DNA of 63,479 nucleotides, counting the filler, from Hyphochytrium catenoides (Eukaryota > Protista > Hyphochytriomycota): the NCBI GenBank assembly GCA_900088475.1. It is 9 parts of 9 records of this genome, joined end to end, with 100 filler letters (N's around TTAATTAATTAA, not from the genome) between each part and the next. Parts side by side here need not be neighbours in the genome. Positions count along the whole stretch, not along the records: positions 1,238 to 17,999 come from FLMG01000433.1; 8 more parts are not named here. One strand, 5' to 3'. The translations under genes and the position numbers were made by a program. The notes below the pieces were generated by a model, which saw nothing but the letters and a program-made list of their open reading frames with translations, searched no databases and was not told the origin of the DNA. This document shows positions 1,238 through 17,999 of this stretch, piece by piece. The number at the start of each line of letters is the position of its first letter. The first letter of the stretch is position 1.

Positions 1238-1407
1238 AGTGACTACTGTACTACTGACAACGAACATAGTAGCACTCAACATAGTAGGACTGGTCACATT
1301 AAATGTGGGTTGTTGGGACTGCCGAGGAAGTACAAGGACAAGATGTTGAACTGTGATCGACGCTGAAACCAAAAATGTACAGCGGACGCAGAGGGGAAAA
1401 ACCCTGG

Positions 1408-1415
1408 TATATAAA
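1408..1415 (+). promoter_or_regulatory. TATA box about 30 nt upstream of the LTR tRNA-like gene
   Basis: TATATAAA at -30 relative to G1438; conserved in LTR2. Confidence 0.55.
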
Positions 1416-1437
1416 CAAAACCGAGATCAGTTAAAGA

Positions 1438-1518
1438 GTACGTTTGGTGTATGGTGCATACTGGTTAGGGTGTCGGCATCAAAGACAGAGGTCCTGGGTT
1501 CAAATCCCGGAGCGTACA
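1438..1518 (+). tRNA. tRNA-like gene (tRNA-Pro-derived, probably non-translating) inside the 5' LTR
   Basis: Acceptor stem GTACGTT/AGCGTAC plus discriminator A. A-box-like TGGTGTATGG. Variable loop AGGTC. T-arm CTGGG-TTCAAAT-CCCGG (B box GGTTCAAATCC). TT-AGG-G loop as in tRNA-Pro(AGG), followed by about 12 nt of intron-like insert. TTTT terminator at 1523-1526. D and anticodon arms are degenerate. Confidence 0.75.
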
Positions 1519-1594
1519 AAACTTTTCTCCGTTATATCCAGACACCCCCCAATATTATTTCAAAGTGCTCACCATCAAATGATAAAATCTAACA

Positions 1595-1612
1595 TGGTGT
1601 ACGCTCCGAGCG
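1595..1612 (+). promoter_or_regulatory. Primer-binding site (PBS)
   Basis: Starts with TGG directly after the LTR CA. The first 14 nt are the exact complement of CGGAGCGTACA-CCA, the 3' end of the LTR-encoded tRNA-like RNA. Confidence 0.85.
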
Positions 1613-1712
1613 ATTTAACTCGGGCAATATAGTGAGCCATTCGGTTTTGTGACCACGGATGTCCATCCACAGTTCCATTTGAATCTAGAGCTTACAGAGT
1701 TCTCTAGATTCC

Positions 1713-1719
1713 GGGGGAG
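1713..1719 (+). promoter_or_regulatory. Polypurine tract (PPT)
   Basis: GGGGGAG abuts the TG of the 3' LTR. Confidence 0.75.
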
Positions 1720-1974
1720 TGTTGAACTGTGATCGACGCTGAAACCAAAAAATGTACAGCGGACGACGCAGAGGGGAAAAACCCTGGTATATAAACAAAA
1801 CCGAGATCAGTTAAAGAGTACGTTTGGTGTATGGTGCATACTGGTTAGAGTGTCGGCATCAAAGACAGAGGTCCTGGGTTCAAATCCCAGAGCGTACAAA
1901 ACTTTTCTCCGGTATATCCAGACACCCCCCAATATTATTTCAAAGTGCTCACCATCCAATGATAAAATCAGACA
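1720..1974 (+). repeat. 3' LTR (255 bp)
   Basis: Copy of 1344-1594 with +A and +GAC insertions and six substitutions. Confidence 0.9.
1818..1898 (+). tRNA. tRNA-like gene, second copy in the 3' LTR
   Basis: Same fold as 1438-1518. T-stem is a perfect CTGGG/CCCAG. The anticodon position reads AGA instead of AGG. Confidence 0.7.
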
Positions 1975-1975
1975 C

Positions 1976-2298
1976 TGTTGGATCTGTATGGGATGATTGG
2001 ACAATGTCATTAGATCAGAGTGCTCTACTTATAAGCCCAACTGGGGTCCCATAATCTAGAGCTATTCTGACCATGCCAACTATTCCTAATAAAGTCTAAG
2101 ATATGGATTATAGAGATATCCCGGTCTGGAATAGTCAGTACTGAAGGTATTCCGGGGTACTGACCATAAGCCATAGATATAAACAGGGACATTTCGTTGG
2201 CTTCATATCTCGGCTTCTACTGGGAGTTTAGAGCTGAAACTTGGGTAGTTAAGCTTGCCAGCTTGTAGTCCACATAGCTGTGCCCTCAAACTCCAACA
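1976..2298. mobile_element. Solo LTR of a second family
   Basis: 323 bp bounded by the perfect 7-bp inverted termini TGTTGGA/TCCAACA. TATA-like motifs on both strands. Followed by CAAGA (2299-2303), identical to the 5 bp before 1344. Confidence 0.6.
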
Positions 2299-3442
2299 CA
2301 AGATGGTGTGTTATTGGTTGGCAGTAGTGATGGGTTATAGTAACCGCACAAAATAAAGTAGGTCTAGGCGCTACGTCATAACCACCCTTACCTCATAATC
2401 TACCAGACACATCGTCTGTCATCAATCAACAATTTTTTGCAAGACAAACGCCGATCTGAGCATTACGAGCTTCATGTATCTAACAGTCTCAGGTTTTTCT
2501 TACTAATACGGTTTTATTTGAGGCTGAGACAGTACCATAGCCTCTAGACCAGGAGTCTTGTCTACGAAGTAATACTACGACTGCTATTATCACCACGCGG
2601 TTGTATGAAGGAAAGAAGAAGGGGCGGGGCATTCATCATTCCTCGGAACGAAAAATTGCTTCTAGGTGAACTCAACTCACCAACCAAGACTGCGCTCCGA
2701 CCGTTGGTGCCGCAAAAGCCAGACCAGACCCCCCTCCCCGGCACGGGCATTCGGAACAGTACCATCGAGGCCCTATTAACCGTCCTCTAGAGATGGACCG
2801 AAAAACAGCGGTAGGTCAGATTGAGGTTAAAGGGGTCAAGTAGAGTCAGGACGGCGCAATGGCCCATCTGTTCTGTGTCGCGCTGAACCAATGTCTTATC
2901 TCCCTGTGAGCCTCATAACTGGTTGTTAACCCAAGGTCTCGCCGTCCTAAAGAATAATAACTTCCTTAAGGTGGCAGCGTTCCTCCTACTGCAGGAGTTT
3001 CTGGTGTGAACCGCCACACTACAGACATAAACTACCTGCTGAACTCTCGCTGCATGAGAGAGTGGATTTGGTTCAACCAATCGTGCTTGATTACGTCGAA
3101 GGTCGTGACAGGTGACCCAAATGTACCAACTCCTTCTGACAAATACAAAGGAGTCGACAGCTTCAATAACTAATAAGTCTAGAACAACTTGATTGTCAGG
3201 TTTTATATCAATCACCTCCTCCATTCTCGCAAGGACAACTGTAGGGACAGCCTAAGTTCTAACTCCAACAACTACCTAGAAGAAGAGAAAAGCCACTGAC
3301 CTACAGCTACGAAGAGCGGAAGCCCTTTCTACAGTCGTAACACAACATAAACCTGGAGGACGTATGCCCCTGACGCTTATGGTGCTGATTTAAAATGGAT
3401 GCAGCGGGGGAAAGTTAAAAAACGATGAATGGGGTGAGGCGG

Positions 3443-5339
3443 TCAAGGTCGTGTCCTCAGCAGTTTGACTTCCGTCGCCAAGTCTTTTTTAAAGTTGCCT
3501 CTCAAGAACTTGGAAAAGAATTGGCTCCTCATTAGAAGGGATTCGCCTTCCATAGATCGTCCTTGGTCCAGCATAAACTTGCCTAACATCACAGCAGAAA
3601 TCTTATAGCCGACGGTTCGTTGTAGCTATAACTCTCAGAAAGAACCCACCGAAGGTAAGGAAGAGCATCGCCGCTTCTTTGACGAAACGCGGAGTCAACT
3701 CCTCTTCTCTTCCTCTCCGAGCTAAGAGTTCAGCTTCCACTGCTGTGGCTGCGGAAATAAAGTGGGAAGTGGCTCCATCAGGATCATTCCTGTTCACGGG
3801 AGGATGAATCATGCAGCCAACAATTATTTGTTAGAGGAGTACCAAGATTGACGACGGGTCCTCAACAGAGAGAGATCAACTTCGCCCGTCCTGGTAAATG
3901 CACCTTACATCTTGTCGAGACACTGCGCGATGCGGCCTAGCAGTACAAAGCGATCTGTAACAATGTTCATGTATTCCTTGGTAGCATTATCCTGGGAGGT
4001 AGGACGAATATCCATAGCTTCATAAGCTCGAAGTGCCTAAGATCATCGGTGTAATAGCAGCAAGTGGCAGGTGAGGTGAGAAGTACTCCACGGTAGGTCA
4101 GGTTCATTACTTGCTGTAAGTATAACAGGGCTTCGGGGGAATGGTTGAGGTCTTCCTCCAAATCAGCTGCGGCAAAGGAAAGCAGAAGGTACTGGCTCGC
4201 GGCTCTCGACTGCTGAAGATTACAGCGCTCAAAGCGAGCCAGAGCCTGCAGGAGAAGAGGACCACCGTGAGGGAAGGACCACCGTGAGGGACAAGTCATC
4301 AGTAGACTAAATAATTGACAAGGAAAGTCGCGCGGAAGAAGATGGGCTCTTTTCTGACTGTGACCTCGTCGAGGAAGGCCAGCGCGCATTTCTCCCTCTG
4401 CAATCGACTTAGTAGGTCAGCTGTCTCATAAAACACCTTCCCTGACACCTCGTGGTCTTACCAAAAGGTGTAGGCGATGTCGGACATGGAGAGAAAGGTA
4501 ACGAAGACGGTGTTAGCAAGGTCGTCCAGCGCTAGCTGTTTCAGAAGGTGAGCGTAGAGATCCTCTCGCGTACCTTGAAACTCTTGCGGAGCTGCGAAGG
4601 AGGCGGCGCGGAGGTACAACTTCAGAGCACGGGGATAGTCTCCAGCCTGATCCGCGTTCTGCGCTCCCAGAAGCGCTCGAGCGATCTCCTGACCGTTAGG
4701 CCTCTTGGGTTGCCCTGAAAACTTCTGCAGTCGAATAGAGGGGACGCCCAAATCAGAATAAGGGAAGAGCAAGAGAAAAAAGTGAGACAGGAGAGGAGCT
4801 TCACGGCCGACTGGAGATACTGCGGACCTGAAAAGCAAGGAGAGCTGCGAGAGCCAGGAGAGTCCAGTAAAGGACGGAAGAAGTGTCGGAGCGCGCCCAG
4901 CTAGCGAACCGTCCTCCGTGCTCAGTAGAGAAGTGCCGCCGACAGTTAGGGAGCAGGCTGCGAGGTAGGGTGGAAGGGTTAAGAGGGAATACATACGAGT
5001 CAACCAGTTGATGTGCTGTTTCCTCCGCTGTCCGCTTCCTTACCGCCTTGGCTGGCTTCCACCGCCTCTGGTCGATCCTGTGTGCACAGCAGCAGAGGAG
5101 CTCCGACGGAGGACAAGAAGAGCTGGAAGCGACGGGTTCATCATCATTTGGCTCCGACAGAGAGGGATCTGTGAGGCTGGTCCCAGACAAGAGAGACTGG
5201 TGTGCCTGCTGCTGCCACGCAGCCGCTTGAGAAGCAGCGATGAAGGGGTGCGCTCCGAGGCCGAGGAGGTGGAAGAGAAGGAGCGCCGAACATGTGCTCT
5301 CCAGCCCAGTGTCGAGCCGCGGATGAGGTGCCGCGCCAT
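3443..5339 (-). CDS. Multi-exon TPR-like helical protein with predicted mitochondrial presequence and one TM segment (TTC19/Mgr3-like architecture)
   Basis: GT-AG exons join into one protein: MARHLIRGSTLGWRAHVRRSFSS (R/S-rich presequence) ... SVLYWTLLALAALLAFQ (TM) ... ALLGAQNADQAGDYPRALKLYLRA ... EALLYLQQALRAYE ... GKFMLDQGRSMEGESLLMRS, stop at 3443-3445. Confidence 0.55.
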
Positions 5340-5639
5340 CACCTCTCGAAGGGTGAACAGCAGAGGAAGACAAGTAGGAGCCCTGTCGATCGTGTGTTCA
5401 CTCCGCCTTCAGCTCTTCATCCCTTCGTCGTCCCTCTTCTTCCTCTCTCTCTCTCCAGCTCCACTAACAGCGCCTACGGAGCGCTAGTGATCTCAAGAGC
5501 TGCTGCAAGGGACCAGGGAGAGGAAGAGCAGCGCGAAGCGGGAGGGAGAGCAGGGAGGGCAAGAGGAGAGGGAAAAGCGCCAGATGAAGGAGGAGGAAGA
5601 AGAAAGAACACACACCCTGTAGAACTAGGATACCTCTTG

Positions 5640-6190
5640 AGCTTTTCTCCCTAAAATAAGTTCCTTTCTCACCTTTCCCTGTCTTCCTTCCTTTTTCTCT
5701 CTCCCTCTCTCTCTGCTCCTCTGTCTCTCTCTCCAGCTCTCTTTTTCTCTCTCTCTGTCTCTCTCCCCCTGTCTCTCGCTGTCTCTCTCAGTCTCCTCTG
5801 TCTCTCCCTGTCTCTCCCTGTCTCGATCTGTCTCTCTCTGTGTCTTCCCCTTCTCTCTCTCACCCTCTCTTTGCCCCCTCTCTCCTCTCTTTCTCTCTTT
5901 CTGAGATCTCTCTCTCATCTCTCTCTCGCCAGGAAGTTTCAACACCGTCCTTGTTCGAACGCTGCCGTACTAAGTGTACGGCCCCTGACTGAATAAGTCT
6001 GTAGAGCGGCCGTTAGCGGCTAGGCAGCTGCTGGCAGAAGAGAAAAAAACTCTCACTTCCTCTCTCTTCCCGTCCCTCCTCTCCTCGACCTCTCCTCTTC
6101 TCTCCTCCTCTCCTCTCTCCTCTCCTCTCGCGTCCTCTCGTCTCCTCTTCTCTCCTCCTCTCTCCTCTCCTCTCCTCTCCTCTCCTCCTT
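5640..6190. repeat. (CT)-rich simple sequence in the divergent intergenic region
   Basis: Long CT/CTC(T) tracts flank a short unique core at about 5930-6050. Confidence 0.85.
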
Positions 6191-6269
6191 GGCATCGGCC
6201 GCCATTGCCAGTTTCCAACGCGCACACGGACGGGGAGCCCACGGCCTCTGCATCTCACGAGAGGGAAGG

Positions 6270-7672
6270 ATGGGAAAGAAGCGGCGGAGGGAGGAGCCAC
6301 ATGAAGGGAAGGGAGGGTCCAGGCTAGCGGTGAAGGAGGAGCGGCCCGCCAGCGGTGCGCGTGACACTTTCCGTCTGATCTCCGAGTCCAATCCGAACCC
6401 GCGGCGAGTGGGCGCTTTCTCCAGCTCTCAGGATATTCTATTGGTCGGGGAGGGCGATTTTTCCTTCTCCCTTGCGCTGGCCATCCAGCTGGTGAGCCCC
6501 AGATTTAGAGCGAGCGAGGGAAGGAAGTGATGTGGAGCGTGAGGTGATGGGGGGAGAGAGAGTGGAAAGAAGAAGAGGTGGTGGCAGAGGAGGTACAGAG
6601 AAAGACAGAGTTGATGCTCACCCCTGACTCACTGGCCGTTGTGCAGGGCGGACGTCGGCTTTGGGCGAGCTGCTATGATTCGGAGTCTGAGCTGCTGGCG
6701 AAGTATGGGGCTGCGGGAGCTAAGAATGTTCGCTGCCTGGCGGAGACAGAGGTGACGATTGGCAGCTTATCCTATACCCGCTGGGTCTCTTACATAGATA
6801 TGTCTGGTAGTGTCGCTGTCTGTACGCTCTCTCTTCTGTTGGTGGGTCCCCTGCTGACATCTCCGTGTCCTCATCGTCTAGGCGCAGGTGCTGTACGAAG
6901 TGGATGCGCGACGCCTGGCAAGCTGCCCGGCGCTGACTGGTCGTCAGTTTGACCGGATTGCTTTCAACTTCCCGCACCTTGGCGGCTCCACGGAGGTCGC
7001 GGTAAAAGAGAACCAACGGCTTATCCGTCAGTTTTTCCGCTCTGCAGTTCCTCTGCTGGCGGGGCCATCAGGACGAATCTTGGTCACATTGAGAGACACG
7101 TCCTTCTACCGCTCCTGGGACCTTCCAACACTCGCAGAGCAGAGCGGTCTCCGTTTAGTGAGGTAGGGCTCTCTGCACTACCCGTCACGAGCATGCAGTG
7201 AACTAACCATAGTGCCTCCTCCCACGGCCGAATGATGATCACGGGTTCTCCCCTTATCTCCACTACTTGTCCTGCTCTTTTCCTCTTCCGGGCCTTCTTT
7301 TCTCCGTATAGTAAGGAGAAGTTCGACCCTACAACGTTCCCCACATATCAGCCTGTGCGCACCGACCCCGCCTTTAGAGAGGCGCCCAGCACAGATGACG
7401 CCGTTGTCTACAGCTTTGGCCTAGATGCAAAACAGCCATCTCACGGTGCCAAGAAGGAGGCAGATTCCTTTCCAAGAGCGAAAATGCACGAGGAAGGCAA
7501 GGAGGCCAAGCAGCCTCCTGGTCAACCGCCTTTCAAGACTCCTCAGCCAAGCAAAGAGGCACTTCGCTGCCTTCCCTGTGGCCAGAGCTTCGCTTCTGAG
7601 AAGAAGTATAAGGGCCACATCAACTCTAGGAAGCACGCACAAAGGCTCCGACAGCAGAGAGGAAAGAAGTAG
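6270..7672 (+). CDS. BMT5: DUF2431 / BMT5-like 25S rRNA uridine-N3 methyltransferase with C-terminal C2H2 (matrin/U1-like) zinc finger; 4 exons
   Basis: Motifs ILLVGEGDFSFSLAL, SCYDSESELLAKY, VDARRL, FDRIAFNFPHLGG, NQRLIRQFFRSA, YRSWDL. C-terminal CLPCGQSFASEKKYKGHINSRKH. Three GT-AG introns. Confidence 0.8.
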
Positions 7673-7856
7673 CAGAAATCAGGGCCAAAGGATTTTGAGA
7701 GGAAGGTTAAGGGAACGACGATGGTTTGAGTCTTGATTACTAGGTTACAGGCAGGAGAGACAAAGCTCCCTGTGACTAAAGATTCGAGCTGTTGGCCACG
7801 CCAGGAGAGGAGCTGGTATTGAGACTTCAGGAGGCGGATGGCTATTCCTGTTTCTA

Positions 7857-10208
7857 TTATGCGTTGTCGCCGCCCCAGTAGGTGTTCTTCAACTTAATCT
7901 TCTTCATCTCCCGCATATCCAGTTCAGCAGCCGCGCCTTCCGCACCCTCAGTGGCTGGTTGAGCATCATATGAGGACAAGCCAACTCTCGTCAGCAAGAG
8001 AAGAGGTAATCTGACGGATAATGCAATCGCACGACTGATGATGACGAGGTCAAAGCCTTACCCGTACGCCGAATCTCGGCGGCTATTGCGGCAGCGATGT
8101 TCCCCTTCTCCCGTGAGGCTTGTATTCCGAGCTCCCCCTCTTGCACTTCAGTCCGAAAGACCATAAAGAAAGGCTCCGCCGAGAGCAGAACGAATAAATT
8201 TCCTTCACAGTCAAATTGGACGCCGCCAATAGTAGCAGGGCACTCCACGTCAGAGGACAGCGGCGAGAGTGAGGATCCATCGGCGGCCAGCTGATAGAAG
8301 AAGAGTTGCTTCTTCCTGAGGTTCAAGAGAGAGAGAGACGGAAGTTAACGCCAAGCGCGAGAAGGTTGAGAGAAGGTTGAGAGGAGCTCGAAAAGGAAAG
8401 AGTTAAAAGATATTAGCATAGGCTGCGGAAGACAGCCTCCAAAGCGCTTTTACGTACGCGTAAGTCCCAACGGCGAGGAGTCTGGAGTTGGGGCAGAAAG
8501 CCATGCACGACGGAATAGTCTTCGATCTGTCTTCCCACCAATTTGACCACTTCTCCTCCTCTTCCCTCTTCCGCTTAGACTCATCCACAGCCTGAGGTTG
8601 CAACAGAAGTGAGAGGATGAGCGTGAGGGCATCATGAGGCGCGGGCAGTTGAGAAGACCATCGGGCAGAGTGCCGCGGGGATTGCAGTGTGACTTGGCGA
8701 GGCAGAGACAACTAAGAAATGGAGACTGTAGAGAGGAAATTAAGGGATACATAGAGAGAGATATGAGAAGGGTGGCCGTTCTTGGACGTAACCTCTTGTG
8801 GGAGCTCTTCCTTGTGTAGCTCCTTCCCTGCTTTGAAGTCCCAAAGGCGGATGGTCGTGTCGCCTGAGGCAGTGAGCAGCACAGACGGGTGCGCTGGGGG
8901 CAATATCATGGAAGAGATGAACCTTCGAGCGGTTAAGGAGAGACAGATAAACATTTTTATCGACCGACAGAGCCAGCCTTGAAGGAGCAGAGAGCTAGTG
9001 GGACGAAGGTGTGAAGGAGACAGAGATAGAATCAAGGGCGCCAAGACACGCCAGAGACAATAATGGGAAGTACGAGGTGGGAAGGGACAGCCACGCAAAG
9101 CACTGCAGCTAAGCAGGTAAACGGAACAGGAAGTAGAGGGAGATAGCTAGCGAATAGGTAGGAAGCGTAGCTGGTGCTAAGGATACTGCTTATGTCCAAG
9201 GCAGAAAGAATGAATGTTGCTAGTGCGCGGGAAGTGTGAAACGCGCACTTTCTCGTCCCTGTCCGCCGACAGCAGCAGCGTCTCTCCCTCCGCCATAGCC
9301 TGGACCACCGACCACCGGATATATCGTCAGCCGGTCAGCCACCCGCCTTTCTCATCATCTATTCGTCAGCACTCACCAGGGCGGTGATGATCGATGCAGT
9401 GTGGCCTAAGATTAGCTTGCTCCTGCCCTCTTCAGGACCCACAGAATATGCACGGACGTCACCCTGGCGCGCGAGACAAAGGGGACAAAAAGAGTGGGAG
9501 AGACTTCCGGTCAGCAGCAGATCTCCTACTATCCTGGCCTTGCCCTTTGACCTCTTTCTCTCCTTCCCTCTCCTCGTACCGTCTTGTCCCCAACCAGTAG
9601 CACCTCCTCGCTAGCTCCTTGCGGGCTGGAGATGGATGTGAAGGTGCAGGCAGAGGGCTTCTTGCTCGTTTGTCTAGAAGTAAAGTGAACCGTGAGGAGG
9701 AGGCCGTAGCAAGTGGGAAAGGGAGAGATACAATGAAAGTGAGAGAGAGCGGCGCAGAGAGAGAGAGGAGATGAGAGGAAGAAGAGAGAGAGGAGTCACA
9801 CGAGGACTAGGAAGAGCGGCACAAAGAACCTGCTGAACAGCAGCCTTCCCTCCGCGTCCCAGATCTTTGCGCATTTATCGTCGGCACAGCTGGCGAGGCT
9901 CCTGGATCGGGCACTGAAGGCGACGCATCGCACGGTCCCGCTATGTACCCGCGACTCGTCCCGCTCTGCCTTCACTTTGCCGGTCCTAGGGAGGAGGAGG
10001 AGGGGGAGTCAGTGCTGCGGGAAGAGCGAGAGATACAGCAAGAACAGGAACTGAGCAACACCTCCAGCAGGAGCTTCGGTAGGAAGAGATAGAGCGAGGA
10101 GAGGCACTCGGGATGGAGCGACTCTGACCTGAGGTTTGCGAGGATGACATGCGGCCCTGTCGCCACCGCGAGCAGTTCGCTGTCGGCTGAGATGGCGATG
10201 AGCGTCAT
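7857..10208 (-). CDS. WDR4: WD40 non-catalytic subunit of tRNA m7G46 methyltransferase (Trm82/WDR4); multi-exon
   Basis: Exons give SCADDKCAKIW, KKPSA, LGHTASIIT, LSADRDEKVRVSHFPRTSNIHSFCLGHKQFIS and LLTASGDTTIRLWDFKAGKEL, which are diagnostic Trm82 motifs. Confidence 0.9.
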
Positions 10209-10454
10209 GATGGGAGGGGAAGAGGAGACTGAGAGAGAAAGAGAGAGAGGAAGACAGAAAGAGAGAAGGGGCCCGGTGCAGCGGGGCTCTTGAGCGCCCC
10301 TTGACCTCTACAGACTGAGGTGCAGTGTGGTTCTATTGGAAGAGGAGGCTGACAGAATTGAAGGCTGACAGAGAGGCGGAGGGGAGCTATCCTAGTGGGC
10401 GACGGAGAGCGAGGACAGAGAAGGATGAAGCCTCTGAAAGAGCAGAGACGAAGT

Positions 10455-10582
10455 AAGGGTGAGGAAGAGAGAGAGAGAGAGGCAGATGGAGAGCGACAGA
10501 GAGAGAGAGAGAGAGGGAGAGGGAGAGAGAGAGAGAGGGAGAGGGAGAGAGAGAGAGGGAGAGAGAGAGAGAGAGAGAGAGA
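10455..10582. repeat. (GA)n microsatellite upstream of WDR4
   Basis: Visible GA dinucleotide run. Confidence 0.9.
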
Positions 10583-10860
10583 CAAACTTTCTGATTCTGA
10601 TGGCCACTGCCAAGCCCAGATATCTAAAATATACAGCTCTATATTAACGATAATAGGTCAAAGACACCCACACATTTTAAATAGTAAAAGTTGATCTCCC
10701 TCCTCTGCTAACCGACACAGCGCTGCTCCTGGTGCTCCACCTCCGCCTCCCTCCCTCTCCCTTTTCCCCTCCCTGGCAGCAGCAGGTCTCAAGCTGCGGG
10801 CCGCTCTCTGGTCGCTATCTACGCTCTCTTCCTCCGGCTGACGCCTCGCCCTCAGCCATC

Positions 10861-13800
10861 TCACTCCTGCTCCCTCATCTCTTCCCCAACACTCAGGCTC
10901 GCGCGCCGCAGCAGCTCCTCGCAACCAAGGATCCTTAACAGCGGCAGCTCGCCCCCCTCGATCTCTCCCAGGCATCGCATCAGAAGCGCGTCCTCGACAG
11001 CGGCAGCGCGATGTAGAAGCTCCCGCCAAAGCGCATCCAATTGGCGACAATCGGGTTTGAGACTCTTCAACATCTTCAGAGCCCGTGCTTCTGTGAACAA
11101 GCAGCGGGGAGATGCTTGGGCCGAGCTTCTTGCGCTTTCAAGAGCGTCGACCACCTGGCACACGTCTCCCTGGCCACGCCGACACCGCCGCCAGAGCAGT
11201 GCAGCCTTAAGGAGCATCCTGCGGCTTCGGTTCACGCAGAAGTGCGCATCTGAGAGGAAGTCCTCAACTCTTTGAAGAGCGGATGCCTCTCTGCCTCGAC
11301 GGAGGTCCCAGAAGGCGGGAACCAGCGCTGGGTCCAGGAGCGAGAGCTCTGTCAATGTCGCGTACGGTGAGCGCTGGAAGGTCTGCGGCTTGAGCGCCGT
11401 GAAGTCCAGCTGCTCCCTTGTTCGCTCCAGGTCAGCGGTGGAATTTGTGAGATAGGTGAGCCAGACCTTGACCGTCCGCGTCACAATCTGCAGGTAGAAG
11501 AGAAGGTGAGAGGAGGTGAGTGAGCCAGATGGAGGCAAATGGAGCTGACTAGTTATTGAAAAGCAAGTCTTGCAAGGCGTTACTATCAATCGGCTTACAT
11601 TGAGTTCCTTATGCAGCGAGTAGTGCAGGACTTTGCTCCGGGAAGCGATGAAAGTCCGCAGCTGCTGCTCAAACTCTTCGACCAGCTCCAACGCCTCCTG
11701 CGTCCGGTTCACTTCCAAATAAAAATTGCATAGCAGCAGCACCGCGCGCTCGCAGGTCAGAGGATGGAAAGGTAGGGATCGCAGCAACCGCAGCGCCTCA
11801 TCAGCTAGTTGGCTAGCCGCCGTCATTCCCCCTTTCCGACACTGAAGAAGAGCACGGCGAAGGAGTGCAAGTAGTGCAAGGTCCATACCATAAGCGGCGA
11901 TGAGCTCAGCAGATATCTCGACAGGACTGGCCGCGTAGAGCGATTGGATGGTCTCACAGCGCGTCTCTGCTGCTTGAAATTCCCCTCGGAGGAGATGCAG
12001 AGAGCACAGCTGCTCAAGAGCCTTCACTAATGGAGGTAGAGAGCCCAATGCCCTTGCCTTCTGATAAAACTCCTCGCAGACTTGACCGGTCTTGAAGTAT
12101 TGCGCGTCATCCGGGACCAGCCGCGTGATCAGGCAGAATGCTAAGTCGAGGGATGGGTGAAAGAAGGAAGAGAACAATAGGTGTTTAGAGCTTAGAGAGA
12201 GCTCCCATCGGCAGGCGACGCGAGAGAAGCGACGACAATGAAGAAACTAACAGCAGACAGTGGGGATATTGGCATGAAAGGCAAGAGAACAGGAATGGCA
12301 CTACTAGGTCATCTGAGTCATGAGTTTTCACATCCACCGCGAAAGAAGAGACAGAGTCAGCGAGCTACCTACCCATGCCTCCTAGGATGTCGAGCTGCAG
12401 GCGAGGTGGCACTGCTACCATAAAGCCAGCTGCTCGTTGGAAGCAGGCTGCGTACTCTCTAAACTCTCGGCGAAAGAAGTGGACCCTGGAGAGCAGCAGT
12501 AACAGAGAGACTTGCGCCTCCGCATCCACTGCACAGATCCCCTCTGCATCCTCAACCCCGCACTGTTGTGCGGCAGATAGAAGATTCTTGGATTCCTCTA
12601 ACATTCCAGCATCCATCAGCGCCCGTCCTCGCTCCAGCAGCAGGCGGAAGGCTCTGGCCGGGCTGGTGCTTCGGATCCAATGGAACATCAGGCCTCCCTC
12701 TAGCCCCACAAGCCCGGCGTCTGAGAGCTCCTGCAATGCCTCCGCAATCTTTTGGTGGTAAATTTTTCTCTGAGCGTCCGGGATAACGGAGTAGATAACC
12801 TCATGGAAAATTGAATGAGTGAAAGAGTATACTCGGTCCTCCTCGTGCAGCTTCTTCAGCTCCAACTCAGGGTTCTCCTGCACCATCCCATGGAGCACCG
12901 TCATTCCGAGCACGAGATCCAGATCCATCTGTTCCGATTCATGCAGGGTCCGGACCAGAGTAGCTGAGAAGTCAAAGCCAATTACACTAGCAGACTTGAG
13001 CACAAGCTGCTCCGGCGGTGTTAGAGCGTCAAAGCGCGTTAGGATCAGGTCCTTCACACCGGTCGGAAGCTCCAGGAAGTCCAGCCGATCGGTCAAGATA
13101 CACTCTCCTCCCTTCACTAAGAGGTAGCCCTGCTGGAGCAAGACCTTCAATAGGGTGGTGAGGGCGATTGGATGTCCTTCTGTCCGCTCATGTAGCCAGT
13201 CGACCAGTTGCTCTGGTACATGACGGACGTTCATGATCTCTAGACACGCTTTCAAGCATGCCGCTCGGTCGAGCTCGCCCAAATGGATCTCATCCGTGTT
13301 CCGATGGTGCCCCACAGCCTAGATCAGGCAAGTAGTCAGGTCTCCAAATAAACAGAGAGCTCGGTAGTAGGATGTCAACGCAAGAGTTTGTCCTATCGAC
13401 AGCCAAGAACCGCCGCCGATAGAAAGAAACAAGGGCAAGAGCTGCCAGAGGAGAGTAAAGACAAAGGGACTGATCACCACATTCGTTGGCTCACCTCCAC
13501 AATATTTAGGCTTTCATTGTTCACCACCGTGTATCGCGTCGTGAGAAGAACAAGCACTTTCTTAGGAAACTTGTTAAGGATGCGGAGAATGAGCTCCCAA
13601 GAGACCTTATCTAGCCAGTGCCCGTCCTCCACCATCAGAACTAGTGACCGCCTGTTTAGCACGAACTTCTTTAGAAAGCCGGTAACTAATTCGTTGGACA
13701 TCCATAGCCGCTCTTTGCCTACAGGGTTAAAGGGAACGAATGAGGAGACGTCAGCAAGAAGTAAGACGATGACATTCTCATTCGCAGACCAGAGGAAGGA

Positions 13801-16800
13801 GCTACCGCAGTGGACTGTACATACGTAGCCTTAGTTCTGGTTGCTAAGATAAAGACAATATAGGCGCGGCTGACTCAGGGCAGAGGGAATGGTGCAAGCT
13901 TGAGGAACAGAGGACGCATAGAATGGTGGCGTCTCAAAGGGAGAAATAAATCGGGAGAACACTGCTGTTCCCTGACCTTTCAACTGTGCTGTCACTTCTG
14001 TCTCCTTACAGCGCACCCATGGAAGAACCAGACTGATCAGCGGGCTCAAGGCCGTCAGTTGAGGGCATTCGTGCAGCATGCACCGCAGAGTGCGCTCAGC
14101 AAGAGGAAGTGCCGTCTTCAAATCACCGTTTTCTGGGTAGTCATTCTTCCTAATCTCAGCGCCTCTTTCCTCCTCGTCTTCCAGGCCTAGCAGGATCTTT
14201 TTGAGCGAACCCTTCTCATAGCTTCCGCGCTTTTGACGGAGGCGAACAATGGCCTGAATGAGCTCCTTGCCTAGAAAGTTGATGTTGGAGCTCTCCTCAG
14301 GGGAGGCGTTGACAGTTATAACCTATGGTATCGATCACCTTAGATTCCGCACCCTCGCCATGACAGTAGGCACATGAAGGCTAAGCAAGAAAGAGTGGAA
14401 AAGAACTAGAAGACACTGAGAGCGCAGCATGAAAGATCACTGCTCAAAAGACCGGCCATGACACGACACAATGACGGTATGACGGTCACCACATGAACAG
14501 GGATGAAAACAACTAGAAGATGCTCCACCACCTCCGGCCCTGCGGACTGCAGGTAATTTTCCTTAGCCTTCTGCAGAAGTCGCGACTTTCCAAACCCGGC
14601 GTTAGCACAAATCAGCACGCAGCCGCCCCTCTTTCCTTTCTTGAGCTGTCTGATCCGTTTGTCTATGAGCTCTACCTCCTTGTCGCGCCCTACAAGGAGC
14701 TTCAGGGAGGAATGTCGTTCGATTCCTGGCTGGTCACTACTTGAAAAGCACGTTAAATGGGAGGGGACAACGTAAGGGAAGGGATAGGCATGACGACGGC
14801 AAGGGAGTAGGCACTCTTTATGTAGAATGGAACTCACAGCTGAATCAACTGCAGGGGTCAATACATCTATGAGAGGATGACCTTATGATGTGGACAAAAA
14901 CTTACTCGGAAAGTCTTTGTGGAAAAGGCTTGTATGCCGAGACAACTCCAGGGTAGCCTTTAGCAGCTATTGGTTCGCTTTTTTCAAAAGTCAATGAAGG
15001 ATCTTGCTTGCAAACATCATAAGTCTAGGACAGCAGTGACAGGATTGAGTGGAGAGGTATGATAAACATGGCATTAGTGACTTTGGAAAATCATAGGCAA
15101 GGCTGAGAAGAGGAATCACAGATTTTTAGAGAGCGGACGTAGGGAGAGCAGTTCCAGGCACAAGACAGAAAATTGGAACACAACGAAGGCCATCCGAGCC
15201 CATAGAAAGACGACCCCTCCCACCTGCTGGTCACAGAGGATACCCTCGTTCGACTCTGACGCCATCAGAGCCGCGCTGAGGTTGACGCTGGGTCCAATGA
15301 CGCAATATTCGCACCTCTCCACAGAGCCTACTAATCCGCAGTGCACATCTCCGTACGTGACCCCAATCTTGGACGTCAGGCCCCTTTCCTGTAGCTCTTC
15401 TCGAACGTCCAACGCGCAGAGGAGCCCTCGCCGCGCGTCATCGCGATGCTTCAGGCCCGGCAGCCCAAAAGTTCCGATGAGAACGGTTCCCTTGTCATCC
15501 ACAATAAATTGTCTGAGCTCACCGCCCGCGCGTCTAAGTGCTGTGACTACCAGAGAGAGAGTCTTTTGCATGGCAGGCAGAGGCCCAATCTCCTCCTTGA
15601 GGATTGATAGAGAAGACTGACTGATGGAGATAAAAAGAACAGCCACTGGTCGGAGCTCAGAGATCATTTCTCCAATGGGATCACTCAGCGTCTGGACTAT
15701 AGACCTGCGAGCGCATTCTGGCACGTAACCTGCGCAATGCAGCATTACAAACGCCGAGAGAAAACCGTGAGTATCGATACAATGGCAAATGACGGGAGGA
15801 GGAGATGATGACAAAGTGCCCAACTCATTATAAAATCAAAAGGTCGAATTCTCAACCGACTATGGAGGTGAGACAGAAAAAAAGTTAAGACAAACGAACT
15901 GTCGAAGCCGCCGAGGAGACTAAGAGAGATATAAGAGATTGGCTGGATGAATCCCTCAAAGAAGAAAAGTCCGCCAATAAGGTGGATACGATAGCACTCC
16001 TGTCCCACCTCTAAGAATCGGTTCAATGTCTCCGTGATAAGTAGGCGTCTCGTTCTCCGTTAGCTGCAGAGAGCTGGACCGCCGCAGTCCGGGAGCAAAA
16101 GACAGAATCCTCACGGTTCCGGTGTACAGCTCTTCCCCCTGGTACATGTCCCTATGTTTGCCCAGCAACTGCCAGGTTTGAGGAGAAAGACAAAGCTGGC
16201 GTAACACGGGTCAAATAGTTTGTCAAAGGAACAAAATGAAACAGAGTAAGACGCTAAGGAGGCGGCGTATAGAGGTTATAAGTTACAGGCGCGGCGTACT
16301 ATCAAGGATGAAGGATATCAAGAGGTCAGGCCAACGATATAGATAATGGGGAGGTGGCCTCGTGGTCCTACCTGTTGGGAGCCTGCTTCTCTCTCTGCGG
16401 CGGTCACCTGGGTTATCGGTTCTCCTTCACTGACAAACTCCCAACGCCCTTTGGAACCTACATAGTAGGCAACCATCTCTCCAGAGCCAACCCCGCCATG
16501 TATAGTAAGCTCCAGCGGCTCAGAGCTTGAAATGGAAGGAGACAGGGAGGGAGAAAACCCATCGTCCACCTCGTCCTTGACAAGAAAGGAGCCAAATTTC
16601 TCGAACATCTCAACAGCACAGGAGACCGCGACCTCGGCCGTGTCTCTCTCGTCTCTCATCTCTGTAGCCCTCCACCAGATAAATATTGCGTCACCTATGA
16701 GCCCACGAGCGAGGTAGAGATCAGCAAAGCACACAGAGCGATCAGAAGCAATAGAGAAGACAGATAAGGCCACTGGCAGGGACGGCAGTGGACAACAAGA

Positions 16801-17945
16801 GCGACTTCATGTCGGAAAGCTATGGACACGATGAATGTCATGGGCCAGGGTCTGAGTGGTACAACCATTGGTGCCTAGTTATTGTCGCATACCTGCAAAC
16901 TTGAGGACATCCCCACCGTGTCGGAAGACCAGTTCCAGAAGCCTCTCAAGATAAGAGTTGATAAAGAAGTTCAGCTTGTCCGCTGCTTGCTCAGGTCTAA
17001 AGCTCTCTCTCAGCCTTTCTCCCAGTATGGTGGAGCCGCTGATGTCGATGAACAGCATCGTTCCTCTCATCCGCTCCAAGTGAGGCGCAGCACGCCGGCA
17101 AAAGAGGGCGGCGCCTGAAGCTGAAGAGGAAGGATCCACCGTCGGACTCTGTAGATTGATGTTGTCGCTGATCCGCCGACCAACCACCGGTGGGTCCGGC
17201 AGGAGATAGAGGTTGCAGTGGTCCATGACCAGCCTGTGGGGAGAATGATATGTGAGACTGAGACATACTAGGCCGAGAGGAAGAAGGTAAAGAGCGGAGA
17301 TAAAGAGAGGAGACGGAGATAAAGAGAGGCAGCCAGAAGAGAAATGGAGGGCAAGAAGACGAGGGATTGATCGAGGTCACAAGGCGTCGAGAGCAAGAGT
17401 CCATAGGGTAAGGAAGAGAGATCCCTAGACACAAGGAGGAGAGGTCACTTAACACAAGCTTACACGCACTGCTGTTAAAAGAAGAGGGACACATATCCCC
17501 AAAAAGAAGAAGCAGCGAGCACTCGATGAACAGAAGAACGGCGGGCACGCTGAGTATACCGCTGCTTAGCTCCACCGCCTTACCTAGGGACAAACGGTGC
17601 GTAGGCGGTAATGAGCCGCTCTTGAACGTCAGCTCTATCCAGCGCCGCATCATAGAGAAGTGAGTCTTCTCCTGCCGGTCTCTCCGAGGAGAGAGGCGAA
17701 GGGATCTGCTGGTAGTGGAAGATCTGTCTGAGAGACGATGGAGAGTCAATGGAAGAAGGAGACGTGGTTGAGCCATCACTGGCCTCAGAGAGGGATTTTC
17801 TCAAGAAAGAAAAGTCTCTCTCCCTGTCTCTTTCCGGTTCCCCGGCGCGCCAAAGCCGGCTCAGCCTGCGTGTGAGGCCCGTCGTAGTCTCTCTCTCCCT
17901 CATGCTGCTTAGCGCTGAGATGGTGAGGAGAGGGGCTGCTGCCAT
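10861..17945 (-). CDS. Soluble adenylyl cyclase (ADCY10)-family nucleotidyl cyclase: two class III cyclase domains, STAND/AAA NTPase, helical repeats; multi-exon
   Basis: C1: MLFIDISGST, HGGDVLKFAGDA. C2: LRQFIVDDKG, KIGVTYGDVHCGLVGS, EYCVIGPSVNLSA. NTPase: LVGRDKE, ANAGFGKS, LVLMVEDGHWLD, RTEGHP, LKSASVIG, YSFTH. The N-terminal exon is S/R-rich and the start codon is tentative. Confidence 0.88.
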
Positions 17946-17999
17946 GAGTTAGAAGCAAGGTAGAGCCGACCCTGGAGCTGTGTCAATGTCTCTGCTAGC

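Follow-up and report, generated by a model that had tools for sequence, protein, structure and literature searches.

A miniature LTR retroelement of Hyphochytrium catenoides whose primer binding site matches the tRNA-like gene in its own LTRs

Which RNA primes the reverse transcription of a long terminal repeat (LTR) retroelement whose primer binding site (PBS) matches a tRNA-like gene in its own LTRs? This question is raised by a 631-bp element at positions 1344-1974 of a 63,479-nucleotide stretch of DNA from Hyphochytrium catenoides (assembly GCA_900088475.1), which consists of nine parts joined by filler and is called the window here; the element lies in the part derived from FLMG01000433.1 (positions 1,238 to 17,999). 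The comparison of the element with its family members, with the tRNA genes of the host and with published elements points to the RNA encoded in the LTR itself as the probable primer.

The element is a terminal-repeat retrotransposon in miniature (TRIM), which consists of two LTRs of 251 and 255 bp, a 125-bp internal part, a PBS and a polypurine tract (PPT). The 631 bp contain no open reading frame (ORF), and the element has no coding capacity. The LTRs are direct repeats of 97% identity (a 210-nt repeat was found; identity over 250 nt is 96.8%), which start with TGTTGAAC, terminate in ACA and have TG...CA boundaries. With the PBS at 1595 and the PPT at 1713, the LTR-PBS-125 bp-PPT-LTR architecture described in a first-pass annotation of the DNA is confirmed (Table 1). 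Each LTR contains a tRNA-like gene, for which ARAGORN gives a 7-bp acceptor stem with one G-U pair, a D stem of 3 bp, an anticodon stem of 4 bp whose loop is oversized, an extra arm of unusual length and a four-base anticodon that the program leaves undetermined. The T-arm, with a 5-bp stem and a TTCAAAT loop, is canonical, as is the B box within it (GGTTCAAATCC). A TTTT run begins five bases past the discriminator. The annotation had proposed a gene of the RNA polymerase III (Pol III) type in each LTR, with a TATA motif at -30, an acceptor stem, a T-arm and a TTTT terminator, and this is borne out by ARAGORN and by the sequence; of the A and B boxes that it also claimed, the B box is canonical, but the A box has a T where the TRGCY consensus of Kojima has a C. 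The tRNA-like gene does not encode a decoding tRNA, because the Rfam tRNA model does not match it at E<=1. Among the copies of the family, the tRNA-like segment is conserved at 96.4%, compared with 92.5-92.7% for the remaining LTR.

The PBS follows the terminal CA of the 5' LTR directly and is complementary to the 3' end of the tRNA-like RNA with CCA added, at 14 of 14 contiguous positions, in register, and at 15 of 18 positions overall. The tRNA-like gene ends in ...CCCGGAGCGTACA, and the next genomic bases are AAAAC, not CCA; the TGG of the PBS can thus pair solely with an added CCA, the LTR DNA reading ACAAAAC at this point. Both the complementarity and the absence of the CCA from the LTR DNA had been noted in the first-pass annotation, and both hold. 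The chance of an 11-nt in-register match between two fixed sites is about 2e-7, and the predicted duplex of the CCA-tailed RNA with the PBS has an energy of -31.3 kcal/mol. The register, with the discriminator beside TGG directly after the CA of the LTR, is exactly that of a primer. The copy analyses cover the loci fetched, namely 110 LTR matches (66 of them near-full) and 29 full internal regions, and the pairing also holds between the consensus of 63 LTRs and that of 28 internal regions. The exact PBS 14-mer is present in 19 of the 29 full internal regions, and a genome-wide search for it revealed 23 PBS loci, every one of which belongs to the TRIM family. No second PBS-like site was found in the internal region, and none resembling GGTTATGGGCCC, the PBS of the Copia family discussed below. 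The PBS is not complementary to the predicted 5' end of the transcript, GTACGTTTGG, which rather resembles the PBS.

The tRNA-like gene is derived from the host tRNA-Pro(AGG). The host tRNA and the LTR consensus have the A-box region TTTGGT.TA..GGT, the anticodon loop TTAGGGTG and the T-arm in common, and the homology includes GGTTCGAATCC. The LTR copy carries a 13-nt insertion in the variable region and, with this insertion and its oversized anticodon loop, has lost the ability to decode; the acceptor/T-arm half, which is the part recognised by RNase P, RNase Z and the CCA-adding enzyme, has been kept. The acceptor stem reads GGCGCTT/AAGCGCC with discriminator C in the host tRNA and GTACGTT/AGCGTAC with discriminator A in the LTR. 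Acceptor pairs 2-5 are thus changed on both strands and pair 6 has gone from U-A to U-G; since pairs 2-5 differ on both strands and yet still pair, selection for pairing must have acted while the helix was rebuilt. Base for base, the PBS corresponds to the altered 3' strand of the acceptor, and not to the host tRNA, and none of the tRNAs found in the genome shares the rebuilt sequence. This three-way covariation of 5' strand, 3' strand and PBS relative to the parent tRNA is, in our view, the strongest single argument for a functional link between gene and PBS. Covariation of acceptor stem and PBS, which the first-pass annotation had suggested as a check, is therefore seen against the parent tRNA-Pro(AGG) but not within the family, where it was sought and rejected: copies mutated in the PBS or the acceptor lack a matching second change and resemble decayed copies.

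The whole assembly was also screened for an ordinary host tRNA with the same 3' end. The 11-mer CGGAGCGTACA occurs 129 times, compared with 14 occurrences of a reversed control, and the contexts that were read (about 75 distinct ones) are all LTR or PBS of the TRIM family except for three chance matches outside tRNAs. An anchor in the T-loop (TTCRA, 7 nt, AGCGTACA) gave 90 matches, of which 85 continue with A and five with another base; apart from one chance match, these represent the TRIM family, diverged copies or relatives with an intact or mutated T-arm, and the 20 that were fetched from large contigs all lie in an LTR context. Anchors in the acceptor stem at cloverleaf spacing (GTRYGCT...AGCGTACA and the looser GTRYGC...GCGTACA), which were meant to catch tRNAs with odd T-loops as well, retrieved non-tRNA sequences and one family copy. 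In these whole-assembly pattern screens, no host tRNA outside the family shares the 3' end ...GAGCGTACA(CCA) of the tRNA-like gene, with GCGTACA. Among the proline tRNAs of the host, the AGG form (three genes) terminates in CCCGGAAGCGCCC and the CGG form in CCCGGAACAGCCC, and their 3' ends (AAGCGCCC and AACAGCCC, respectively) match the PBS at scattered positions only. For the closest host tRNA, tRNA-Pro-AGG, the predicted duplex with the PBS reaches -13.6 kcal/mol, against -31.3 kcal/mol for the tRNA-like RNA; a host tRNA that fits the PBS as well as the LTR-encoded RNA was not found.

Downstream of the PBS, a possible trace of the priming reaction can be recognised. The 17 nt that follow the PBS (1609-1625) align to the antisense T-arm with one insertion, one deletion and two substitutions, and the PBS region as a whole is an antisense copy of about the last 30 nt of the tRNA-like RNA, including its CCA. 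The TGG cannot have come from an inverted duplication at the DNA level, because the LTR would then give TTT beside the discriminator. A PBS variant at one locus (L093, contig C4384) matches the antisense tRNA-like sequence with CCA over 19 contiguous nt when the consensus T-loop is used, and over 20 contiguous nt with the TTCAAAT form of the window copy. Plus-strand strong-stop synthesis copies the 3' end of the primer, and the retroviral norm is a stop at the modified A58 after 18 nt. The antisense copy can be read as evidence that the matured LTR-encoded RNA occupied the primer position at least when the PBS of the family was formed. The intact 14-mer in many transposed copies argues for a continued role as a primer, as does the fact that no other candidate primer was found.

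BLAST places the 631-bp unit at 60 or more sites of the 61-Mb assembly, and about ten of these hold full-length copies with 84-95% identity to the window copy. Four full copies are flanked by target-site duplications (TSDs) of 5 bp (AGAAG, CTAAA, CGTAG and CTTCA), and the family has therefore transposed. It is not young, because the LTR pairs within copies are 88-97% identical. Near-identical DNA is present in soil and rhizosphere metagenomes, and a scan of metagenomes with a 20-nt motif from the tRNA-like body yielded one match, which is unrelated by BLAST.

A candidate for the mobilisation of the TRIM in trans adjoins the window copy in the form of a solo LTR of an abundant Copia family, here called B. 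Elsewhere in the genome, the B LTR precedes the PBS GGTTATGGGCCC, which is of the Copia type for the anticodon loop of the initiator tRNA, and follows a PPT ending in ..GCGGGGAGG. The B Copia is likely to be the autonomous partner that serves as the source of integrase and reverse transcriptase (RT), because its termini (TGTTGGA...AAATCCAACA) resemble those of the TRIM (TGTTGAA...AAATCTAACA), its PPT core resembles GGGGGAG and both elements produce 5-bp TSDs. The PBS of B is unrelated to that of the TRIM.

According to the proposed mechanism, the TRIM would be mobilised in trans, most likely by this Copia family. Pol III would transcribe the tRNA-like gene of the LTR, the product would be trimmed after A73 and receive a CCA, its 3' 14 nt would anneal to the PBS that follows the 5' LTR, and the RT of the partner would extend the paired primer. 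This primer could be present as a free small RNA, or the genomic RNA of the element could provide it with its tRNA-like 3' end. We infer all of these events, i.e., transcription, 3' processing, CCA addition and priming of reverse transcription by the LTR RNA, from the sequence. That the LTR-encoded RNA primes reverse transcription as a free small RNA has a probability of roughly 0.6 in our estimate. The primer and the PBS would then probably constitute a private pair, which is uncoupled from the host tRNA pool as well as from the initiator-tRNA anticodon-loop primer of the partner. A private, orthogonal primer, as postulated in the first-pass annotation, is the reading best supported by the sequence, given that the screens revealed no rival tRNA, the covariation relative to the parent tRNA and the novel PBS match; each refuting condition of that annotation that could be examined in silico turned out in its favour. 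We consider the chances even that the element represents a third primer route beside host tRNAs and the 5' self-priming of the Tf1 type, in which a TRIM borrows the enzymes of a Copia but has its own Pol III gene for a tRNA that is orthogonal and non-decoding, with a rebuilt acceptor end that co-evolves with the PBS.

Several observations weigh against this proposal. The PBS match extends over 14 nt, not over the 18 nt expected from continuous re-copying of the primer up to position 58; because of this and of the divergence in the T-arm part, any copying past nt 14 is historical rather than ongoing. The covariation is measured against the parent tRNA, not between sister families. The tRNA census consists of pattern screens, and the Rfam tRNA search scored 63 of 1710 candidates; the screens would overlook a tRNA whose T-loop is non-canonical and whose acceptor stem is imperfect, as well as one that is absent from the 4759-contig assembly. 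The sole match in an RNA library is a soil metatranscriptome contig covering 1480-1640, which could also stem from read-through or DNA, and metatranscriptome contigs cannot reveal RNA ends. The T4 run right after the gene should stop Pol III, which is at odds with a full-length genomic RNA. Finally, the family, with LTR pairs of 88-97% identity, may be extinct.

Among the alternatives, the one that survives best is self-priming in cis, which we nevertheless regard as unlikely. A genomic RNA made by Pol III would extend from the tRNA-like sequence of the 5' LTR to that of the 3' LTR, and its 3' end would be trimmed, tailed with CCA and either folded onto the PBS or paired with a co-packaged copy; no free small RNA would be involved, and the mechanism would be the 3'-end counterpart of the 5'-end self-priming of Tf1. 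This model draws on the same complementarity between tRNA-like sequence and PBS, and it is in line with the presence of one T4 run per LTR and none in the internal consensus. However, RNase Z acting on the 5' copy would cut the repeat region (R) off the genomic RNA, and a depletion of T runs, which was considered as a sign of Pol III read-through and rejected, is not significant (two runs observed, compared with a shuffle mean of 1.4).

Two odd loci bear on both the proposed mechanism and self-priming in cis. At L090 (C1131:955-3975, minus) and L091 (C2516:1-2957, minus), the LTR extends from its first base exactly to the discriminator, thus comprising the unique 3' region (U3) and the whole tRNA-like sequence, and is followed by CCA and then by unrelated DNA; the flank before the first LTR base is unrelated as well. 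These are the only LTR copies in the genome that end exactly after the discriminator. Across the genome, just three loci have a C after the LTR-type end CCGGAGCGTACA, and all three have CCA, the third being the PBS at L093. The CCA of L091 possibly belongs to a 4-bp sequence repeated from the left flank (CCAT), which is excluded for L090. A cut at the PPT would leave the genomic RNA of the cis model with a 3' piece that has just these ends and consists of U3, tRNA-like sequence and CCA, which favours priming in cis; yet that model offers no simple route to the products found at these loci, and neither it nor the trans model yielded a clean derivation of them. Captured cDNA of a CCA-tailed tRNA-like RNA and a template switch onto the PBS are both conceivable origins, for which the two loci are suggestive only. 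At another locus (L101, C4311:9729-10349), the 5' end of the tRNA-like sequence, GTACGTT, is joined directly to the PBS by a deletion between 7-nt TGGTGTA repeats, which correspond to tRNA-like positions 8-14 and to the start of the PBS.

The PBS could also be a relic, formed when a CCA-tailed RNA was copied into the PBS region once, at the origin of the family, with priming nowadays achieved in another way or with no present role. The T-arm part of the extension, which has diverged by indels and substitutions, and the age of a family whose copies are 84-95% identical to the window copy are consistent with this idea. We think it improbable, since the 14-mer is intact in the consensus and at the 23 loci, copies with TSDs carry the PBS, the internal region has no second PBS-like site and no other primer was found in the genome.

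It is very improbable that an ordinary host tRNA of the same isotype primes and that the LTR copy is a captured tRNA or short interspersed element (SINE) head serving as a promoter. Priming by host tRNAs is the rule for LTR elements and holds for all published families of the Helenus group (PMC10886601), which is discussed below, and the incomplete tRNA census leaves some room for it; however, it is already largely refuted by the scattered matches of tRNA-Pro-AGG and -CGG to the PBS and by the T-loop and acceptor-stem screens, which revealed no tRNA ending in GCGTACA outside the family. A role other than priming, such as long-range pairing between the PBS and the 3' R of the RNA that would serve its circularisation, dimerisation or packaging, or the targeting of the family's PBS by 3' tRNA fragments as known from mammals, is the least probable alternative of all: the 14-bp duplex (-31 kcal/mol) would be strong enough, but the register is exactly that of a primer, and selection would be expected to act against self-silencing in a family that has attained 100 or more LTR copies.

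TRIMs with tRNA-derived sequence in the LTR have been described as Helenus and also as TRIMp3 (Kojima 2024, PMC10886601). Helenus elements occur in Pucciniales, a few Agaricomycetes, several animal phyla and Selaginella, with TSDs of 5 bp in fungi and plants and 4 bp in animals (PMC10886601). The element described here resembles them in its length of less than 1 kb, its two LTRs, the PBS directly after the 5' LTR and the PPT directly before the 3' LTR, the lack of an ORF, the tRNA-derived sequence in each LTR, in which the B box is present and the A box is matched less well, and the likely Copia partner. It also shares the 5-bp TSDs of the fungal and plant families, which are found at four copies here and not at the window copy. 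As the group is defined by structure, the lack of a match to its published consensus sequences makes the element an independent Helenus family and not a non-member. It differs from the published families in that its LTR is about twice as long and its host is neither a fungus nor an animal. Furthermore, fungal Helenus elements have their PBS in common with Copia (PMC10886601), whereas the PBS of the TRIM is unlike that of its likely partner. The main difference lies in the PBS match: in no Helenus family is the tRNA-like sequence of the LTR complementary to the PBS, and it was judged not to contribute to initiation (PMC10886601), whereas the PBS here matches the tRNA-like sequence of its own LTR with CCA at 14 of 14 positions, and no matching host tRNA was found. 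A search of the consensus file of that study (DataS1) with six motifs from the LTR, the tRNA-like gene and the PBS gave no relevant match; the family is thus absent from the published consensus set, and the comparison with Helenus that the first-pass annotation had called for reveals no published complementarity of this kind. In full-text literature searches, no description came up of an LTR element whose PBS fits a tRNA encoded in its own LTR. The earlier suggestion that the element might be undescribed therefore stands for the matched primer/PBS pair, which was not known and contradicts the published generalisation, but not for the architecture, which is already known from Helenus and TRIMp3.

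Several other systems share single aspects with the element. Cassandra and Ajax are likewise TRIMs whose LTRs contain a small-RNA gene of the Pol III type, which is derived from 5S rRNA and not from a tRNA. To our knowledge, their 5S part has been interpreted only as a promoter, and their PBSs match host tRNAs. Tf1 and Tf2 of Schizosaccharomyces pombe take their primer from the element's own transcript instead of the host tRNA pool. The Tf1 primer consists of the first 11 nt of its own mRNA, which are freed by RNase H, and involves neither a tRNA-like fold nor CCA; the PBS described here is complementary to the 3' end of a tRNA-like RNA with CCA, not to the RNA 5' end GTACGTTTGG. Copia elements primed by the anticodon loop of the initiator tRNA are represented by the B family with its PBS GGTTATGGGCCC, whereas the PBS of the TRIM is of the classical 3'-end type (TGG...). 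Gammaretroviruses are primed by tRNA-Pro, and tRNA-like 3' ends with a CCA tail are found in plant RNA viruses and in the Mauriceville retroplasmid. What the element has in common with these systems is a body derived from a proline tRNA and, according to the proposed mechanism, a tRNA-like 3' end with a CCA tail on which a polymerase acts; they differ from it in that the primer is a host tRNA or that copying starts from the template's own CCA, with no primer gene in an LTR.

Table 1. Features of the TRIM and of the adjoining Copia LTR, with positions in the window
Feature	Position	Strand	Basis
5' LTR, 251 bp, TG...CA	1344-1594	+	Direct repeat with 1720-1974; 63 near-full family copies aligned
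TATATAAA, -30 to -23 relative to the start of the tRNA-like gene	1408-1415	+	Sequence inspection; kept in the family consensus
tRNA-like gene of the Pol III type, 5' LTR, 81 nt	1438-1518	+	ARAGORN; alignment to host tRNA-Pro-AGG
T4 run, candidate Pol III terminator	1523-1526	+	Sole T run of at least 4 in the LTR consensus
PBS TGGTGTACGCTCCG, 14 nt, complementary to the tRNA-like 3' end with CCA	1595-1608	+	Directly after the terminal CA of the LTR
PBS extension, diverged antisense copy of the tRNA-like T-arm	1609-1625	+	Alignment to the antisense tRNA-like sequence; own hairpin possible (CCGAG/CTCGG)
PPT core GGGGGAG	1713-1719	+	Adjoins the 3' LTR
3' LTR, 255 bp	1720-1974	+	96.8% identity with the 5' LTR
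tRNA-like gene, 3' LTR	1818-1898	+	ARAGORN; G64 to A makes T-stem pair 50-64 Watson-Crick
Solo LTR of Copia family B, not part of the TRIM	1976-2298	-	Compared with the B LTR elsewhere in the genome

The window copy and the B solo LTR are separated by a single C, and neither has a TSD of its own; CAAGA at 1339-1343 and 2299-2303 flanks the composite of TRIM, C and B. Most simply, this arrangement can be explained by insertion of the TRIM, accompanied by an aberrant duplication, at the border of a B solo LTR that was already there. Elsewhere, at least five independent insertions of a B LTR lie inside the 81-bp tRNA-like segment (L029, L107, L108, C520 and C3699); other B insertions are found in other parts of the LTR and the sample is biased towards TRIM loci, so that no targeting is claimed. 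At L093 (C4384:460137-460757), a Copia pol gene is interrupted between motifs just upstream of the RT by a piece of about 330 bp with TAGCT flanks, which contains a PPT region of the B type, a hybrid LTR (the first 16 nt of B and the Helenus LTR with the tRNA-like sequence), the TRIM PBS and an end resembling the B LTR. The PBS of this piece has a form closer to the antisense tRNA-like sequence. The piece looks like a recombinant of TRIM and B, as co-packaging would allow. The contig starts inside the end of another repeat (1238-1281, ...GACAACGAACATAGTAGCACTCAACA), which recurs beside TRIM and B copies and forms inverted pairs at L090. A further locus, L026, was considered as a cDNA end healed by telomere repeats and rejected, its TTAGGG units being a short palindrome beside a decayed Copia integrase.

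Further along the window, the regions 5540-5770 and 9700-10600 contain long GA/CT-rich tracts of low complexity with spurious sub-threshold Rfam matches (MIR2118 and the Hsp83 3' untranslated region). A multi-exon gene on the minus strand (14400-17950) encodes an adenylate/guanylate cyclase catalytic domain (Pfam PF00211, E 2e-6) and holds a second cyclase-like exon as well as a P-loop exon. In the assembly, nuclear tRNA genes occur in tandem clusters (Ile, Asn). The 48-kb contig C4759 (L069) is dense in tRNA genes and encodes ribosomal protein L5; its rpl5 matches metagenome contigs only, and in a related metagenome contig (L115) rpl14 lies beside rpl5. C4759 is probably the mitochondrial DNA (mtDNA) of a eukaryote that is neither a fungus nor an animal, the host being placed outside both groups because its mtDNA encodes rpl5. 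We know of no fungal or animal mtDNA with this gene. For a closer placement of the host, a 438-aa ORF retrieved no homologues, and the Atlas returned no more than a eukaryote with a cyclase domain.

The choice of the primer is one of the few steps that tie LTR retroelements and retroviruses to a specific host RNA, and it is also open to action by the host, for example through tRNA fragments that target the PBS. Under the proposed model, an RNA about 84 nt long with the 3' end GCGUACACCA should exist, and marked changes in the acceptor strand of the LTR should reappear in the PBS when the element makes new copies. Tools based on retroelements could potentially profit from such a naturally occurring orthogonal pair of primer and PBS. 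If the model is true, the question that the Helenus study answered with 'no' (PMC10886601) would receive a direct answer: the family would carry its own primer gene, independent of a host RNA and of host action at this step, and its PBS and primer could co-evolve as a closed pair.

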